Positions 728 through 61,790 of a DNA stretch of 64,000 nucleotides are shown here, one piece after another (position 1 is the stretch's first letter; each line of letters starts with the position of its first letter). Source of the stretch: Macrostomum lignano. Taxonomy: Eukaryota. The stretch lies in the NCBI GenBank assembly GCA_002269645.1, contig NIVC01000169.1:124001-188000 (forward strand), given 5' to 3'. The position numbers and the translations under genes are program-made. The notes below the pieces were generated by a model. The model was not told where the DNA came from, did no database searches, and saw nothing but the letters and a program-made list of their open reading frames with translations.

Positions 728-822
728 CTGCTGTGGTGCTCTGCGAGCCAATCATTTCCCCAAGAAAAGTTTTGCCTCTCGGTCGCTAGGTGGTGTTGGT
801 TACTTCAGAATTGGTTTGACCT

Positions 823-10090
<9,268 letters not shown>

Positions 10091-12754: not shown

Positions 12755-14656
12755 ATGGTGAGCCTAATGAAGAATTGATTTGATTTGATTGTGTAATTCC
12801 GAACGTTTTTTTGTCTAAAAAATTAATACAATAAATGGTTTTTATGGATATACAATTGGAGTAAAAGCTTGTTTTTAAACAAATTTTTCTTATATATCAG
12901 CAATGAAAATATAAATGAAAATTTTAAATCTCGAGTTTCAATTAAACATTTTGAAAATTTTTTTAGTCGTAGTTTCTCTTTTTCGGAAAATATTGAGATA
13001 AGTTTTATCGTAAGTAAACGCTGAGATTGATTTAAAATTATAACGAAATGAAAGAATAGTTAAAAAATTAATTTTTTTAATTTTTCTCATCTACACCATG
13101 ACAAGTTTTTAATGCCAAGTTAAAGACAGTATAGCAGAATGTGTTTGTTAAATAAAAAAAAATTTAGTATAACTTTTTCGACGGACATCAGCCAATTTTC
13201 CAATTTATCCATCGCCAATTCGCCTCTCAACGCTCCTCCCATCAGCAGCAACAGCGGCATCACTGGCCACCCGACGAGTTTCGCGTGATCGAGTTGCATC
13301 ACATGAAGCTCGGCCACTTCCTGGCCTACAACTGCTTGGGCAACGCGGCGATGCACGCGGCGTTGTATCCGCTGGCCCTGGCGCGCACTCGGATCACTGC
13401 GCAGCCCGGCCGGCTGGAGTACAGCGGCTTCGCGCACTGCCTGCGATCCGTGCTAGCCCACGAGGGCCTGCGCGGCCTCTACGCCGGAGCGTGGACGCGC
13501 GCTGCTCACGTGATCAACGCCGCTTTAGTTGGGGTCACCTACGAGACGGTGCGCGCCTCGGCAGAGCCGCTGCCAGCGCCGGCGCGTGGTGCCGTTGCCG
13601 GCGGATGCGCCGCACTCGCCTCCCAAGCGCTGCTGGTGCCCGCCGACGTGGTCACCCAGCACATCATGCTGCTGCCCATGGCGCGGCTCAGTCCCGTGGC
13701 CGCCACGGTTGCCATGGCGCCAGGGGCCGGCTGGCTAGGCCAGGCAGGAGCTGTGATTCGCTGGATCCGACGGAGGCACGGGCTGGCGGGCTTCTACAAG
13801 GTGAGGCCGATCACCAAGCTGACACACTTTTGTGAGCAGTTCAATTGCAACTCGGATTTTGCAAAGTAAACGGAATCAAGCTTAGTCTTTGAAACGTTTG
13901 AATACATGTAATTTATCAATCTTTACGCTCACACGTCCGAAGACCATGAGTTCGATTCCGCGCACTGCCAAAGTAGCTTGAGGCTCGTGCAAGGAAATAA
14001 GTCGATGGGGACTGGACGCGCTTTGTCGTGCGATTCACACCCATGAGGGCCAACTCCTTTAAAGCAGAGTGCGCGGATGTCCTTGAACACGTCAATGTTG
14101 CATAATTGAAGGTCGTACACCACGTATGCCCCTGTGCGCTTGCGTGCTCAAGGATCAGCTGAATGGGCATGTCTGCTATAAAATACGAGTTTATCTCAGA
14201 AAACTCTGGTTGAGGCAACTCGATTTTGCATCTACATGTAACTCCTCGCCTGTCCATCCCCAGGGAGGTCTGTGGTCGCTAGTGCTGTTCCTGCCCAACT
14301 CGGCGGCCATGTGGTCCGCCTATAGCGCCTACTGCGACTGGCTCTACCGCTGGCTCGATTCGCCTCCTCGACTGGCCGTCCAGCTCACCGCGGCACCGCT
14401 GGCAGGCGCCACGGCCGGTCTGCTGACCAACCCCATCGATGTCCTGCGCCTTCGCGTCATGCTGCAGGCCGACCGCGGGGCCGGCGCTAGGGACGCACTG
14501 CGTCGACTCTGGGCCGAGGAGGGACCGGCCTGGCTGGCCAAGGGCCTGAGCGCCCGCCTGGCGCAGTCAGCTCTGTTTAGCTTCCTGTTTGTACTTTATT
14601 ATGAGCCGGCTAAGCGGCTGGCGCTAAAAGACGAATTCAAAGGCGCCCTGCTTTGA
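12755..14656 (+). CDS. SLC25A44: Mitochondrial carrier, SLC25A44-like
   Basis: Exons 13246-13800 and 14264-14656, joined GFYK|GGLWSLVLFLPNSAAMW with a gtgagg donor and a ccccag acceptor. Three carrier signatures are present (YPLALARTR, VPADVVTQH, NPIDVLRLR), and VIELHHM resembles IIEWEHL of SLC25A44. The start codon is probably an ATG-only exon at 12755-12757 (AAATG|gtgagc). Confidence 0.88.
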
Positions 14657-17270: not shown

Positions 17271-19021
17271 TCACAGCGCGGATTGCGAAGTTAAAGCAGG
17301 CCCGCCGGCAGGAGAGAGGTTCGATTCGGCCAGCACTCGCCGCACCACCCGATCGCAGAGGTCGCGCATGGCTGACGGCTGGCAGCTGTGCTCAAGCCAG
17401 GCCAGCGATCGGCCGGACAGCTCAACAAAACTCGACGCGTCGCCAGTGGCTGAATTAAACGAATCGAATAATTCGTCCATAACGCCGCGAAAGACGGCCA
17501 GTTTAACGCTGTCCGGCACGCGGACGGAGGCGGCGGCGGCGGACAGCGAGGAGGCCAGTCTGCCTGAGGCCAGCAACTGGCGGTAGCTTTCTTCGATTAC
17601 CTGTAGCGCCGCTACCTGCGAGTTGTTGGGATTAGAAATCTATTATAAAATATATTTTTGTCTCTTGAAGCTCTGCTAACTGACTTGCAGCTTTGCGGGG
17701 TCATTTTTGGCGACAAATTAATCAAGTTGATTGTTTTCCCGACACAAATGGCTAGGCTCAGAGATGCTATTAGCTACTTTTCATAAGTAGTATTATCTCG
17801 TATTTCTACTACGTATGAGTGCAAGCCTAGGGGGTTGTAGCTTAGTGGTTAAAGCGTCGGACTGACGACTTGAAGGTCGGGGGTAATCGACTCACTAGGA
17901 ACAATTTGTGTCCTTGAGCAAGACACTTAACTCTGCATTGCTTCAGTTCACCCAGCTGTGAAATAGGTGCCAGCATTAGCTGGGGTAATTGAGGCTGTGT
18001 GTGGCGACCCGTGGCGACTATTTTTGGAATTTCCTATTTTTGGATATTAAATTCTATGCTATTGCTACGGCGCTTTGTGGCGCTCGATTATTTTCTCGGA
18101 AAATCAGAAATCGGAAAATCGAGCTAAAGCTCGATAATTAATTAGAAAGAATTAATTATTTCTACCTTCGAGTCTTCTCTAACTCGTCTTTAATTGCCTA
18201 TCCTCACGCCAGATGTTTAACCACCCAAGCAATGTATACTGACCCGCAACTAAATGTACATTACTCCTTCAGTTCTTATTTTACCCCCCTCCTTAATTTC
18301 TTGCCTATCCTCTCGCTCTGGGGTTTAGGTATCTACTATGTACATTAACTACTGTACATTGTTTTCTGCCTTTCATTTCTAACTCTAGCCCCAGTTTTAT
18401 GGCCTATCATCAAGTCAGGGGGGTAAAACTTCCATCAATGTACGCTGTCCCGCTAGAAAATGTACATTACACTCACCATTAAATTACAGCCTATTCATTT
18501 TATTTCCAATCCTCAGGCCCGGGGTTAAAGCATCAAACTTTTACGCGCAAAAGTACATTTTAGCTACTATTAACACATTTTATATTTGTATAGTAGCTTT
18601 ATATCAATTACTCATCCAGCACACAGAAACTACAGCAGCTTTTTTTACTTCACTTGCTACTTGCAAGTATAATAAGCTGAAAGTACAAAGAATTAACCTG
18701 TTTTTTCAAGCAGTCCAACTCGGCCTCCTGCAGTTCCCGCTGCCTATTTAGAGACTCCATGTGCCGAATCGATCGCTGCAGGATTGTCGCCTTGCTAAGC
18801 GCGGCTCCTTTGCCGCCGCCGTCGCTGGTCCCGCCGCCAGACTGGACCTGTTCGCTCAGCCTCTCGTAGCCCAGCTTAATGCTGTCGCGCCGTTTCTGCT
18901 CGGACTGCAGGTGCAACTCCCGACGCCTGTCCGCGGCCGCTGCTGCGGCGGCTGCGGCATCATCATTACACTGCTGCTGTTGCTGCTTGCGCTCTTCATC
19001 GGACTGAGTAGTCTTGAGCAT
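17271..19021 (-). CDS. MLX: Max-like protein X (bHLH-Zip)
   Basis: Exons 18698-19021 (acceptor tttacag|GTC ATG at 19024) and 17271-17615. The bHLH reads DRRRELHLQSEQKRRDSIKLGY...LSKATILQRSI. The zipper is joined KQ|VAALQVI. The C-terminal DCD-like block KLAVFRGVMDELFDSF...SLAWLEHSCQP matches MLX. Confidence 0.9.
17829..18010 (+). mobile_element. Same CORE-type SINE, 3'-truncated (copy B)
   Basis: The tRNA head and CORE match copies A and C. Similarity stops after GTGGCGACCC. Confidence 0.8.
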
Positions 19022-19164
19022 GACCTGTAAAGTATAATGGATTTCTGGCGTATTAGTGCTCTGAATTTCTCTCACAGATCTTTGCAACCTTCACCAATAG
19101 TGGACAAGATAAAGTGCCAGTTGATGCCCACTGAGTGCTAGCTAATTACCACTGACTGCGAGCT

Positions 19165-25703: not shown

Positions 25704-49141
<23,438 letters not shown>

Positions 49142-54400: not shown

Positions 54401-55434
54401 TCATTTACAGCAAAGATCAACGAAACAAAATTGTACTTTTATTAACTATTCGTTGTAGCAGTGCGATATCGCACCTTTAAAGATAAAAGAGTTTTCTGTT
54501 GAGTGCACACGCCAATGGTTAAAATCTGAACAAAATGCTACTCAAACAAATTTAAGGCAGGTTTTCACCATTTTTTGCCTCTCGTCAGTCAGTCATAGAT
54601 CGACCTTAGGCACAGGGTCACAGGTGCGTCCAAAGGTGATAAATAACTTGATTGGAAAGGTGCGTCCACCTCCAATTCACGAGCACAGGTCAAAGCAGGT
54701 ACACACAAGAGAGAAAGGATAGAGAGAGTACGCTCGCAGACAGTTAAAAAACGGTGTTTTCCGACCTCGTTTAAATTGTGAGAATAGTATCAATGGCAGC
54801 TGTTAACAGAAAAAGCAATGGTGTGGTAGGGGACGGATCAAAGATATACATGTACATGTCTTGGACCTACAGGGGTAAATAGAGCCCAAATAATGCAACT
54901 ACATTAAGAAATCCCTTCGGTGTTTACCGAGATACAATCCGTAGAGCCTCAAGAGTTAAATGCTCGGGATTCAGGTACCCAAGACTCCGATGTCGCTACT
55001 CTCCTGGCATCATTCGTGCCTCCCTGCCCTCACGCTGACTCAACTCTCTCACCCGGCTGCACCAGCGTGAAGCAGAGGCTTCCCAGCCCGAACAGCGCCG
55101 CAGCGATGGTCTTCACCACTCGGAAGCCCCAACGGTCCAGGATGAACCCGGATGCGACATTGCCGAACGGTGTCACCACCTGGGTGATGGTGAACGCCAG
55201 AGTGATCTGATCGCGCGCTGCCGAACAGCTAGCGGTGGCGTTGGCGCCAGCTGTGACATTGGATGCGCACAGGTGGCCGTAGACACCGCGGTCATTGAGC
55301 ACGGGAACCAGAGAGACCACGCCATAGAATAGACCGGAGAAGAGCAGAGTCTCCAGCATGGCGAGGCCGATGGTGACGGCGATGCGCAGGTCGGAAGGCG
55401 CTGCCGGAGGCGGCTTCTTCTCGCTGTCAGACAT
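51439..55434 (-). CDS. SLC43A3: SLC43-family MFS transporter (SLC43A3/LAT3-like), 7 coding exons
   Basis: Exons 55053-55434, 53731-53897, 52803-53045, 52457-52709, 52036-52225, 51835-51952 and 51439-51579. All phases close. Motifs: LETLLFSGLFYGVVSLVPVL..GVYGHLC, GFILDRWG, SNLQ, RLNYFFGSLN, FRAFLFS, F..ENFG and IHPL. Confidence 0.88.
53975..54230. repeat. (GTCACTT/GTCACT)n 6-7-bp repeat
   Basis: In SLC43A3 intron 1, near the acceptor. Confidence 0.95.
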
Positions 55435-57992: not shown

Positions 57993-58006
57993 CTGAAAGC
58001 GTATTT

Positions 58007-58053
58007 TGTTGTTTTTGTTGTTGTTGTTATTGTTGTTGCTGTTGTTGTTGTAG

Positions 58054-58084
<31 letters not shown>

Positions 58085-58085: not shown

Positions 58086-58708
58086 GCTTTTGTAAGACAA
58101 TATTTTTTGTAATAACGTCTCTGAAAATTCACCGTAATTGTCTTGAATTCCTTGCTTTATTTGTTGATCTTACGTGCAAGGATTAACGAATATCTGGAGC
58201 GTCTGGTGGAATTAATCCACTAAGAACCCAACCAGTACACGAACACCAAGGACCACTGTAGTATAACAGTACCGAAAACTCAAAGATCGTGTAAATTTTT
58301 GAAGGCCAATTTCCCCGAAAAAATGTACACTGCGACAAAAAAGTCAGTGTAATTCTGACATGTCGAATCTGTTCTCTTTTTGAAATCCCAAACACGCCGT
58401 TTAGGCTCTCAATCTTATAAAAACAGGCCGGATCGCTCAACAACGGTTGAGCACTGGGTACAGCTAAATATTTTCGAATCTGCTTTCCGATTTTCTACAG
58501 TGGCGAACTGCGTCAAAAAGCCGCTTTTGTAAAGAAAAAGAAACAAAATGATTTAGTTAAGAAGCTCCCTGTTAATTAAAAAACGGTTTATTTAACTTTT
58601 CATTACTACAAGCGCACATTACTTTGAAATTATTTCAGAACGATAGTGATAGTCTGATTTTAGTCTGGTCAGTTGTGCAACGCTGGACAGGAGCAGAAGC
58701 ATAGCGTT

Positions 58709-58978
58709 CTATTTGCCGAATATTTTGCGGGCGACTCGGCCGTAAAATCCTAAGACATTGCGAAGCTCCCTCTTTAACCTAAAATTCTTTAACCTAAAAC
58801 GGAACTTCTTCTGCAGCTCAGCGGCCCTCTCGTCTGTCATCTCCGGCTCGTCCATGTCGGCCAGAGCCTCCAGCGCCGCCATCGCCTCCGCGTCCTCCTC
58901 CGACATCTCCTGGCTGTTGGGTCTGGCGGCGGCCAGAGCTGCGCACAGCAGGAGCCCGAGAACGAACTGAAACCTCAT
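58709..58978 (-). CDS. Secreted peptide precursor: signal peptide, acidic propiece and cationic amidated C-terminal peptide (candidate antimicrobial peptide)
   Basis: Single-exon 89-aa ORF MRFQFVLGLLLCAALAAA|RPNSQEMSEEDAEAMAALEALADMDEPEMTDERAAELQKK|FRFRLKNFRLKRELRNVLGFYGRVARKIF-GK*. The prepro region has GC-rich coding-like codon usage, and a TATA-like CATAAATA lies about 95 nt upstream. Confidence 0.75.
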   Translation of the reverse strand: MRFQFVLGLLLCAALAAARPNSQEMSEEDAEAMAALEALADMDEPEMTDERAAELQKKFRFRLKNFRLKRELRNVLGFYGRVARKIFGK

Positions 58979-59069
58979 GCTTGCTGGGTTGATTTGTGTA
59001 GCCTGATGAAGCTGAGAGAATGCTATTTAGCTTAGGCTTGGTTGATCATTTCGGCTCGGAGAGGCCCTG

Positions 59070-59077
59070 TATTTATG
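59070..59077 (-). promoter_or_regulatory. TATA-like box upstream of the peptide precursor
   Basis: GCATAAATACAGG on minus, about 95 nt before the ATG. Position and sequence only. Confidence 0.3.
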
Positions 59078-59589
59078 CTGCAAAAATTGGCACGTTTTTC
59101 CGGTCATTGGAATTAGGAGGTGGCAGGACCTCTTTTCACGTGTTTCAGAGTGTTTAGAGTTCGCCAATTGAACCCATAGCAAACTGCTTTGTTCCCGAGA
59201 CAACATTTCGAGACATTGAACTTGAATTACAATTTGTACTTTCAGCCTATCATTATGTTGCAGCAGGGTTGTCTAAAATGCGAGCTTAATTAAAACGCAA
59301 AATTGAGTGCAGAGCACTTGAGATGGGCTCGAGAGCACAAAGCGCGACAAGGGCAAATGCATCTGAGAGAGAATCTCAGGCAATTTCTCTTTCTCTCTCT
59401 CTTTCAGATGCATTTATGGCAGGCCACTAGGATTGGATTCATTATTCCAAGGGCATTTGTGTAGCCTATAATTTTTATTAACAACCTGCGTTTATCTGCA
59501 TGTGTGTTAAAAATCTATTGCTTCCAATTGACGGGGACTCTAAAGTTTCACTACAATATTCCTAGTAGCTTCGTGTCTTTTTCATCTCC

Positions 59590-61790
59590 AGTCTCCGGTC
59601 TCTGTTATCTAGTCTCCTGTCTCGGTTATCTAGTCTCCTGTGTCGATTATCTAGTCTCCTGTCTCTGATATCCAGTCTCTTGTCTCTGATATCCAGTCTC
59701 CTGTCTCTGATATCTAGTCTCCTGTCTCTGATATCTGGTCTCCTGTCTCTGATATCCAGTCTCCTGTCTCTGATATCCAGTCTCCTGTCTCGGTTATCTA
59801 GTCTTCCAAGTCCTGTCTCATGTCTCGTATATTCAATCTCCTGTCTCTGCTTTCTAGCCTCCTGTCTCTTATATCCAGTCTCCTGTCTCTGATATCCAGT
59901 CTCCTGTCTCGGTTATCTAGTCTTTCAAGTCCTGTCTGATGTCTGTGTTATCTAGTCTCTTGTCTTTGTTATCTAGTCTCCTGTCTCTGTTATTCAGTCT
60001 CCTGTCTCTGATATCTAGTCTCCTGTCTTGGATATCCAGCCCCTTGTCTCTGATATCTAGTCTCCTTTCTCTGATATCCAGTCTCCTGTCTCGGTTATCT
60101 AGTCTTTTAAGTCCTGTCTGATGTCTGTGTTATCTAGTCTCCTTTCTCTGATATCCAGTCTCCTGTCTCTGTTATCTAGTGTCCTGTCTCTGATATCCAG
60201 TCTCCTGTCTCGGTTATCTAGTCTTTCAAGTCCTGTCTGATGTCTGTGTTATCTAGTCTCATGTCTCTGAAATCTAGTCTCTTGTCTCTGATATCTAGTC
60301 TCTTGTCTCTGATATCTAGTCTCATGTCTCTGATATCTAGTCTCTTGTCTCTGATATCTAGTCTCTTGTCTCTGATATCTAGTCTCTTGTCTCTGATATC
60401 TAGTCTCATGTCTCTGATATCTAGTCTCTTGTCTCTGATATCTAGTCTCTTGTCTCTGATATCTAGTCTCTTGTCTCTGATATCTAGTCTCTTGTCTCTG
60501 ATATCTAGTCTCTTTTCTCTGATATCCAGTCTCCTGTCTCTGATATCCAGTCTCCTGTCTCGGTTATCTAGTCTTTCAAGTCCTGTCTGATGTCTGTGTT
60601 ATCTAGTCTCTTGTCTCTGTTATCTAGTCTCCTGTCTCTGTTATTCAGTCTCCTGTCTCTGATATCTAGTCTCCTGTCTTGGATATCCAGCCCCTTGTCT
60701 CTGATATCTAGTCTCCTTTCTCTGATATCCAGTCTCCTGTCTCGGTTATCTAGTCTTTCAAATCCTGTCTGATGTCTGTGTTATCTAGTCTCCTGTCTCT
60801 GTTATCTAGTCTCCTGTCTCTGGTATTCAGTCTCCTGTCTCTGATATCTAGTCTCCTGTCTTGGATATCCAGCCCCTTGTCTCTGATATCTAGTCTCCTT
60901 TCTCTGATTTCCAGTCTCCTGTCTCGGTTATCTAGTCTTTTAAGTCCTGTCTGATGTCTGTGTTATCTAGTCTCCTTTCTCTGATATCCAGTCTCCTGTC
61001 TCTGTTATCTAGTGTCCTGTCTCTGATATCCAGTCTCCTGTCTCGGTTATCTAGTCTTTCAAGTCCTGTCTGATGTCTGTGTTATCTAGTCTCATGTCTC
61101 TGAAATCTAGTCTCTTGTCTCTGATATCTAGTCTCTTGTCTCTGATATCTAGTCTCATGTCTCTGATATCTAGTCTCTTGTCTCTGATATCTAGTCTCTT
61201 GTCTCTGATATCTAGTCTCTTGTCTCTGATATCTAGTCTCTTGTCTCTGATATCTAGTCTCCTTTCTCTGATATCCAGTCTCCTGTCTCTGTTATCTAGT
61301 CTCCTGTCTCTGGTATTCAGTCTCCTGTCTCTGATATCCAGTCTCCTGTCTCTGATATCTAGTCTCCTGTCTTGGATATCCAGCCCCTTGTCTCTGATAT
61401 CTAGTCTCCTTTCTCTGATATCCAGTCTCCTGTCTCTGTTATCTAGTGTCCTGTCTCTGATATCCAGTCTCCTGTCTCGGTTATCTAGTCTTTCAAGTCC
61501 TGTCTGATGTCTGTGTTATCTAGTCTCATGTCTCTGAAATCTAGTCTCTTGTCTCTGATATCTAGTCTCATGTCTATGAAATCTAGTCTCTTGTCTCTGA
61601 TATCTAGTCTCTTGTCTCTGATATCTAGTCTCATGTCTCTGATATCTAGTCTCTTGTCTCTGATATCTAGTCTCTTGTCTCTGATATCTAGTCTCTTGTC
61701 TCTGATATCCAGTCTCTTGTCTCTGATATCCAGTCTCCTGTCTCTGATATCCAGTCTCCTGTCTCTGATATCCAGTCTCCCATCCCAAGT
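59590..61790. repeat. 21-bp satellite (CTGATATCTAGTCTC(T/C)TGTCT) with higher-order structure
   Basis: The marker GTCCTGTCTGATGTCTGTG recurs at spacings of 182, 119, 350, 182, 182, 119 and 434 bp, all n x 21 + 14. Confidence 0.92.

Follow-up and report, generated by a model that had tools for sequence, protein, structure and literature searches.

An uncharacterised pre-pro-peptide gene of Macrostomum lignano belongs to a taxon-restricted family with hypervariable cationic C-termini and a possible host-defence role

A short open reading frame (ORF) on the minus strand of a 64,000-nucleotide stretch of the flatworm Macrostomum lignano (assembly GCA_002269645.1, contig NIVC01000169.1, positions 124,001 to 188,000; the window, hereafter) raises the question of whether it is a gene and what kind of peptide it would deliver. 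An earlier note on this DNA had proposed a candidate new precursor of a linear antimicrobial peptide (AMP). The best explanation that we can offer is that the locus is a single-exon, TATA-driven gene for a pre-pro-peptide of a lineage-specific multigene family. Re-translation at explicit coordinates gave an intact ATG-to-TAG ORF of 89 codons (58709..58978, minus strand) and confirmed the tripartite layout described earlier, with a signal of 18 residues, an acidic spacer of about 40 residues and a 29-residue peptide of net charge +9 followed by G-K-stop. The coding parts and the 3′ end of the gene are as follows.

58925-58978, minus strand: signal peptide, codons 1-18, MRFQFVLGLLLCAALAAA
58805-58924, minus strand: acidic pro-piece, codons 19-58 (40 residues, RPNSQ...DERAAELQKK, with a dibasic KK at its end), RPNSQEMSEEDAEAMAALEALADMDEPEMTDERAAELQKK
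58718-58804, minus strand: predicted mature peptide, 29 residues with an internal KR at residues 11-12, FRFRLKNFRLKRELRNVLGFYGRVARKIF
58771..58799, minus strand: 15-bp tandem duplication in the coding part of the mature peptide, translated as FRLK(N/R) twice
58712-58717, minus strand: Gly-Lys, the predicted amidation donor glycine and a basic residue for carboxypeptidase
58709-58711, minus strand: TAG stop
58587..58592, minus strand: putative AATAAA polyadenylation signal, 117 nt 3′ of the stop

The signal region is hydrophobic (mean Kyte-Doolittle value of +2.27 over residues 3-18) and the A-A-A preceding R-P at its predicted end is consistent with the -3/-1 rule. The pro-piece has 13 D/E against 4 K/R residues and a net charge of -9, and the mature peptide carries 7 R and 3 K against 1 E, a net charge of +9. 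The mature peptide lacks cysteines, as had been stated before, but the precursor as a whole does not, because C12 lies in the signal peptide. The tandem duplication was recognised by Tandem Repeats Finder with a period of 15, 1.9 copies and a 100% match, and the exact 13-mer TTTAGGTTAAAGA is present twice in the mature-peptide coding region. Downstream, the AATAAA is the sole canonical polyadenylation signal in the 260 nt 3′ of the stop. The GC content of the mature region is 0.42, compared with 0.66 in the pre-pro region of the same gene and 0.53-0.67 in the mature regions of its paralogues.

A single-sequence search with the window protein matched three proteins, all of them “hypothetical protein BOX15_Mlig...” entries from the same M. 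lignano assembly (E = 8e-40 to 3e-27). These three closest matches show the same signal, acidic pro-piece and KK, followed by differing Arg/Trp-rich peptides with GK-stop. The GenBank annotation of GCA_002269645.1 was built purely from RNA-seq-based transcriptional units (PMC5730564), and the annotated paralogues are therefore transcribed. Because of these matches to transcribed proteins, together with the purifying selection in the pre-pro region described below, the ORF lies far beyond chance expectation. An antisense ORF (58758..58970, plus strand) was considered and rejected, as the substitutions among paralogues fit the minus-strand frame, and an Rfam scan of the whole window gave no matches, which leaves no structured-RNA explanation.

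The extent of the family was established by two further searches. A profile search of 1.84 billion representative proteins identified nine representatives, eight from M. lignano and one short read-archive contig (L005, from SRR31628392), and found no homologue beyond Macrostomum. A word search with the family profile identified at least 23 clusters at 90% identity that share the signal and acidic pro-piece, with KK ending the pro-piece in most of them. Twenty-two of the 23 come from GenBank or UniProt, where they are labelled solely “hypothetical” or are misfused, and the remaining one is the unnamed read-archive contig; named members are BOX15_Mlig001477g4, Mlig025003g1, Mlig030644g1 and ~20 more. 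The search for paralogues with a shared signal and acidic region and variable C-termini, which the earlier note had suggested, was thus strongly positive. The precursor that the note put forward is indeed uncharacterised; its gene does not stand alone, however, but is one divergent member of a large family deposited as hypothetical proteins. Judged from these searches, the family is taxon-restricted and of a known layout, has database entries solely as hypothetical proteins and is undescribed in the searchable literature.

In an alignment of 10 diverse family members, M1, Q4, LGLLLC, L15 and A16 are invariant, and the family signal motif M-(R/K)-(W/F/Y)-Q-x-x-LGLLLC-x-x-LA is present in the window protein. 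The pro-piece spans ~30-58 residues and ends in KK or KKK in most members, with a single K in P0012 and P0013. The peptides that follow are highly diverse and nearly all cationic, with charges up to +16 and one peptide per precursor. Despite this hypervariability, 19 of the 22 tabulated members end in G, GK or GKR, and the peptides of the paralogues end in L, I, P, C, H or F. The following types of C-terminal peptide can be distinguished.

Long Arg/Trp-rich peptides of 18-34 residues, the type found in the window
Predicted amides of 6-10 residues with strict hydrophobic/basic alternation: FVRVRVRL-G, IFRVRVHI-G, WLRVRARVRI-G, FIHIHF-G
Pro/Arg repeat: P0006
Two-cysteine form: P0007
Others: P0012, P0013

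Within the short subfamily, P0016 (L006 7191 and 10001) has 23 pro-piece residues duplicated, which places a 58-residue pro-piece before an 8-residue peptide; the length of the pro-piece is therefore only loosely matched to the charge of the peptide. The family genes are arranged in a tandem cluster at locus L004, with three intact and two broken copies plus two 5′ fragments, and as paralogue pairs at other loci (L006, L010, L011); no second family copy was found within the window. Such clusters of intact copies, pseudogenes and 5′ fragments indicate birth-and-death evolution.

The conservation of these genes ends abruptly. When the window was compared by BLASTN with the long-type paralogue loci, the aligned part ran only from 58800/58804 to ~59100. 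It takes in the proximal promoter, the 5′ untranslated region (UTR) and the coding sequence of the signal and pro-piece, up to the KK codon, whose last base is 58805; no nucleotide similarity to the long-type paralogues was detected by BLASTN beyond this codon. Segment-wise global nucleotide alignments gave the following identities.

Window against paralogues: upstream 0.67-0.72, pre-pro 0.89-0.93, mature 0.45-0.53, 3′UTR 0.54-0.58
L001 against L002: upstream 0.91, pre-pro 0.89, mature 0.55, 3′UTR 0.96
L004a against L004c: upstream 0.91, pre-pro 0.95, mature 0.70, 3′UTR 0.81
Shuffled-sequence baseline for the mature segment: 0.47

Across the segment comparisons, identity ranged from 0.86 to 0.95 in the pre-pro region and from 0.44 to 0.76 in the mature region. 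The most telling pair is L001/L002, in which a variable cassette lies between near-identical flanks, a pattern that a gene-conversion boundary alone cannot explain. A variable cassette between conserved flanks is the signature of frog-skin and cone-snail peptide families. Pooled Nei-Gojobori estimates for the pre-pro region (synonymous differences pS 0.176, non-synonymous differences pN 0.065, ratio 0.37) correspond to purifying selection, and in the mature part both classes are raised (pS 0.52, pN 0.32, ratio 0.61). As the alignments of the mature region are saturated and indel-rich, we relied on the segment identities instead of dN/dS.

At the protein level, the window peptide retains a likeness to the P0002 peptide. 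Local alignment of the two gave z = 3.3 and p = 0.009 against composition-preserving shuffles, and they share an FR.R start, RNVL and GRVAR. Based on this significant likeness, the window tail is a diverged homologue and not a random read-through. In the short subfamily, swaps of R to H preserve the alternation of hydrophobic and basic residues (FVRVRVRL, FVRVHVRF, FIHIHF), which points to a physico-chemical rather than a receptor-specific function; selection appears to favour a pattern of charges and not one particular recognition motif.

The conserved region also includes the promoter and leader, whose features in the window are listed below.

59089..59103, minus strand: conserved upstream element of 15 nt, 24 nt 5′ of the TATA box, CCGGAAAAACGTGCC
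59070..59077, minus strand: TATA box, 99 nt upstream of the ATG, CATAAATA
58979..59020, minus strand: conserved 5′UTR block, with TTCTCTCAG (59012-59020) and then CTTCATCAGGCTACAC...AAGC up to the ATG

The TATA box is kept in intact copies as CATAAAT or TATAAAT and reads CATGAAT in the pseudogene L004 17007(-). Approximately 24 nt upstream of CATAAAT, the sequence GGAAAAACGTG(C/G)C was identified in the aligned intact long-type copies, in the P0013 subfamily and in the read-archive contig L005, and the spacing of the element is equal in the aligned intact long-type paralogue loci, L010/L011 and L005. The corresponding element of the short-peptide subfamily (L006) is GGAAACACGTGCC, which contains the canonical CACGTG. 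The element is degenerate in the P0012 subfamily and in one pseudogene, and one pseudogene has both the element and the TATA box mutated. Overall, the arrangement of GGAAA[A/C]ACGTGCC, ~24 nt, CATAAAT and the 5′UTR block was found in the window and at L001, L002, L004, L005, L006, L010 and L011, and we infer that the upstream element is a shared regulatory site.

Within the leader, the block CTCAGCTTCATCAGGCTACA is invariant in all nine aligned copies, and TTCTCTCAG is pyrimidine-rich and resembles a splice acceptor. The gene model of P0001 (the 139-residue BOX15_Mlig001477g4, L004 10001-37330) is chimeric: it takes codons 1-31 from one family copy and continues, 27 kb away, in the leader of a second copy, which it reads in frame. 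It points to cis-splicing from one tandem copy to the next or, alternatively, to a trans-splice acceptor within the conserved leader, and because the join is made to the leader, the AG at 59012-59013 in the window may act as a functional acceptor, in cis or in spliced-leader trans-splicing. The spliced leader is common in M. lignano (PMC5730564). Several “partial” paralogue models also start in translated 5′UTR.

The 29-mer combines its positive charge with 48% hydrophobic residues. Over residues 1-11 the raw hydrophobic moment is large at a strand-like angle (1.15 at 160 degrees), and at 180 degrees the moment of the same residues is 0.27, no better than shuffles; after residue 11, moments of helix type (0.6-0.7) are found. 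AlphaFold2, run on a shallow 10-sequence alignment, predicted helices at residues 3-18, 28-42 and 49-87 with a mean predicted local distance difference test (pLDDT) score of 65.6 and ~73-79 over the cationic part. In the short-subfamily peptides the alternation is perfect, and the 180-degree moment is the maximum possible for their composition.

Based on this architecture, we infer the following route for the window precursor. The 18-residue signal would direct entry into the endoplasmic reticulum and be cut after AAA (A18), and the 40-residue anionic pro-piece (-9) would neutralise the cationic tail (+9) in transport and storage. A subtilisin-like pro-protein convertase would then cut after KK58, a carboxypeptidase would strip the terminal Lys (K89), and the exposed G88 would be converted to a C-terminal amide via PHM/PAL, the established pathway of Gly-directed amidation. 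The predicted product is FRFRLKNFRLKRELRNVLGFYGRVARKIF-NH2, with a monoisotopic mass of 3698.190; if the internal K11-R12 were also cut, the products would be the 10-mer FRFRLKNFRL and the 17-mer amide ELRNVLGFYGRVARKIF-NH2. The released peptide is most likely a host-defence effector that would bind anionic microbial surfaces or membranes. We put the probability that the gene encodes such a secreted, convertase-cleaved and amidated peptide of host-defence type, most likely acting at a barrier surface, at roughly 0.55. The earlier reading of a host-defence or secretory peptide is thus favoured by the precursor architecture and by the family search, but the helical amphipathicity that it invoked appears only modest.

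Several points weigh against this reading. The helical hydrophobic moment of the 29-mer is 0.47 at 100 degrees, which is not significant against shuffles (z = 1.5, p = 0.07), so that the peptide described earlier as amphipathic is cationic and predicted to be helical (pLDDT ~73-79) but has a modest helical moment, and its Boman index is high (3.1 kcal/mol). No omega above 1 was obtained for the mature region (0.61, with synonymous sites also raised) and classical positive selection is undemonstrated. The mature region of the window gene is AT-rich (GC 0.42) and its 3′UTR is unrelated to those of the paralogues, and the window copy could therefore be young or poorly expressed. This copy is also absent from the protein collection, and a gene with exactly this product is not on record; we do not weigh that absence heavily. 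Full-text literature searches for nine family gene ids returned no paper that mentions them, and the literature on M. lignano antimicrobial peptides, neuropeptide precursors, microbiome and single-cell atlases contained nothing on the family. Finally, the internal KR and RR are possible extra cleavage sites, and dibasic cleavage with amidation is also the classical neuropeptide pathway.

That pathway would equally serve a neuropeptide or peptide-hormone precursor, in which cleavage at KK (and at the internal KR/RR) followed by amidation would release receptor ligands such as ELRNVLGFYGRVARKIF-NH2 or FVRVRVRL-NH2. The internal KR of the window peptide fits this explanation, as do the predicted 6-10-residue amides of the short subfamily, which are neuropeptide-sized. 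The conservation is reversed, however, in that the signal and spacer are 89-93% identical and recent paralogues are no more alike in the presumed active peptide than random sequences. A single peptide per precursor with charges up to +16, more than 20 loci including pseudogenes, the failure to find homologues outside Macrostomum in the profile search, the lack of an NPY/NPF or other hormone Pfam match and a predicted C-terminus of KIF-amide instead of RF-amide likewise argue against it, and we consider a signalling role distinctly unlikely. Membership in two specific neuropeptide families was rejected: for NPF/NPY, there is no Pfam match, the 40-residue pro-piece intervenes after the signal and the C-terminus is A-R-K-I-F-Gly, and for the FMRFamide-like (RF-amide) peptides, of which a precursor usually holds several copies, the end is K-I-F-Gly with one copy per precursor. 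The doubts that the earlier note had raised about an NPF alternative are upheld by the missing Pfam match, the missing RF-amide and the position of the peptide, which does not directly follow the signal.

A cationic peptide secreted for a purpose other than immunity, such as a fast-evolving seminal-fluid (prostate) peptide, a digestive or pharyngeal lytic peptide against diatom prey or an anti-predator deterrent, fits the family data in several respects. Rapid diversification confined to one lineage is typical of small secreted reproductive proteins as well, and two studies report many small novel secreted prostate transcripts in M. lignano (PMC5977470, PMC7336406). Furthermore, neither the table of peptide endings nor the segment identities discriminate the target of a membrane-active peptide. 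The literature searched gave no link between the family and the tail or prostate, though, and the searchable supplements of the seminal-fluid screen contained neither the signal motif, nor its DNA, nor three long-type gene ids, a weak point as that study uses other transcript ids. Because architecture and composition are also nearest to known antimicrobial precursors, a non-immune role is in our view rather unlikely. It is improbable, too, that the copy in the window is a duplicate that lacks function or is hardly expressed, with a replaced 3′ half and a tail that would be a relic even in an otherwise functional family. Such a duplicate would be in keeping with the missing protein record, the loss of nucleotide similarity to paralogues past the KK codon, the fall in GC from 0.66 to 0.42 and the pseudogenised family copies elsewhere, but the ORF is intact, the TATA box, upstream element, 5′UTR block and AATAAA are all present, and the tail retains its net charge of +9 and GK-stop and is still like the P0002 peptide at the protein level.

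A wider hypothesis can also be entertained, which we regard as tentative and somewhat short of even odds. The more than 20 genes may constitute an arsenal restricted to Macrostomum and the first AMP family described in a free-living flatworm, possibly co-regulated via the GGAAA(A/C)ACGTGCC-TATA module. The mature-peptide cassette would diversify within near-identical flanks by point change, small tandem duplications and possibly replacement, and a single pre-pro scaffold would thereby yield helical, alternating strand-type, Pro/Arg-repeat and disulphide-loop amides. The literature searched describes no secreted antimicrobial-peptide family in a free-living flatworm, and the innate effectors of Platyhelminthes in general are poorly known. 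M. lignano is a transparent model amenable to transgenesis and RNA interference, so that a compact promoter and a large set of effectors would open host-microbe control to direct tests in a flatworm. Focal hypervariability is also seen here in a clean natural form (a 55% core within 89-96% flanks in one pair), with the same pre-pro scaffold serving cationic peptides of different structure, and the very short natural (X-R)n amides that the family is predicted to yield are of interest for peptide design. Lineage-specific cationic peptide genes in an animal are not surprising in kind; should the peptides prove to be signalling or reproductive molecules, their reversed conservation would be an unusual trait in its own right.

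The surroundings of the gene are rich in repeats. A 21-bp minisatellite of ~107 copies with a higher-order 119-bp period occupies window positions 59580-61780, beginning ~480 bp 5′ of the promoter element. It recurs at L004 11875-12955, ~1.6 kb from a paralogue, and may be linked to the family or may simply be a common genomic satellite. Extensive micro- and minisatellite arrays are located at 800-3740, 6650-7680, 39536-40830 and 58006-58084, including tetranucleotide-type repeats at 39.5-40.8 kb and (TTG)26 at 58006-58084, and these arrays give rise to long spurious ORFs in all frames and to strong local strand skews. A local segmental duplication (43106-44804 and 46117-47843) covers a low-complexity Ser/Leu-coding repeat region, with identical 224-residue ORF translations at 44107-44781 and 47146-47820.

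Elsewhere in the window, an intact 1325-residue gag-pol ORF of a Ty3/gypsy-type long terminal repeat retrotransposon was identified at 29626-33603 (minus strand), with RVT_1, RNase H, integrase zinc finger and integrase core domains. Apparent exons of an ADAM-type gene lie at 26415-28157 (minus strand), where the ORF at 27627-28157 (minus strand) contains disintegrin and ADAM cysteine-rich domains and the Cys-rich ORF at 26415-27365 (minus strand) has a transmembrane-like stretch and no Pfam match. Host gene fragments at 13285-14656 (plus strand), 18650-19087 (minus strand) and 55030-55434 (minus strand) comprise two mitochondrial-carrier repeat exons, a basic helix-loop-helix exon and a weak major-facilitator-like exon; a Mito_carr gene is also found near the paralogue locus L002.

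We compared the family with known peptide systems. At E <= 10, an hmmscan of the window protein against Pfam returned only PepSY_2 (E = 0.34), and a Pfam scan of this protein and 19 further members credited nothing at or above any cut-off. A 27.1-bit “Lock_Gag1-like” match in P0016 was judged spurious, as it lies within the duplicated acidic repeat and has no individually significant stretch. The Pfam model of the frog signal and propeptide matched none of 10 family members. The latarcin precursor model PF10279, which has a gathering cut-off of 25 bits, did not match the window protein and reached just 14.1 bits (E = 0.059) with P0007, confined to its acidic region. The mature peptide matched no sequence in the PDB at E <= 10. 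Because there is no Pfam match at cut-off, no PDB match and, in the profile search, no relative outside Macrostomum, none of the systems nearest in function and architecture, namely the frog preprodermaseptin-type precursors, the Hydra arminins and the spider latarcin-type precursors, appears to be a homologue.

Frog precursors of the preprodermaseptin/brevinin type resemble the M. lignano family in that a signal and an acidic pro-piece lead, through a dibasic site, to one cationic peptide, often amidated via Gly. Like the M. lignano genes, they belong to multigene families whose pre-pro region is conserved and whose mature domain is hypermutable, with synonymous sites raised too, a pattern reportedly described for frogs in the work of Vanhoye/Nicolas. 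The two differ in that they share no Pfam-level homology, the M. lignano site is KK and not KR, the window gene is single-exon, and the M. lignano peptides are Arg/Trp-rich or alternating (X-R)n whereas those of frogs are Lys-rich helices; the flatworm family must have an origin independent of the frog precursors.

Hydra arminins and other cnidarian taxon-restricted AMPs similarly constitute a restricted family with a signal, an anionic N-terminal half and a cationic C-terminal half, which in arminins is released and amidated. For arminins, expression and microbiome-shaping functions have been demonstrated. That the profile search returned only Macrostomum-type members argues against detectable homology to arminins and to trematode helminth defence molecules. 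Spider latarcins and cupiennins are likewise products of multigene families, in which a linear cationic peptide, often amidated via G(K/R), follows a signal and an acidic pro-piece; the M. lignano family lacks a venom context and does not conserve the spider ..E..R motif (DER in the window, DEK in the paralogues). Flatworm NPF and FMRFamide-like precursors are likewise secreted and give a C-terminal aromatic amide from a Gly donor, but they end in R-x-R-F-amide or RF-amide, compared with R-K-I-F-amide in the window peptide, and differ from the window family in its 40-residue acidic pro-piece ahead of the peptide and in the hypervariability of that peptide among paralogues.

With mussel myticalins, bactenecin/PR-39 and the designed (IRIK)2-NH2 and (RW)n-NH2 peptides, the likeness is one of composition only. 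Several M. lignano members resemble Arg-rich strand-type or Pro-Arg AMPs, as in the predicted FVRVRVRL-NH2 and WLRVRARVRI-NH2, which have the maximal 180-degree moment, and in P0006. Compared with strand-type AMPs, the window peptide is mixed, with a large 160-degree moment in residues 1-11 and a helix-like character after them.

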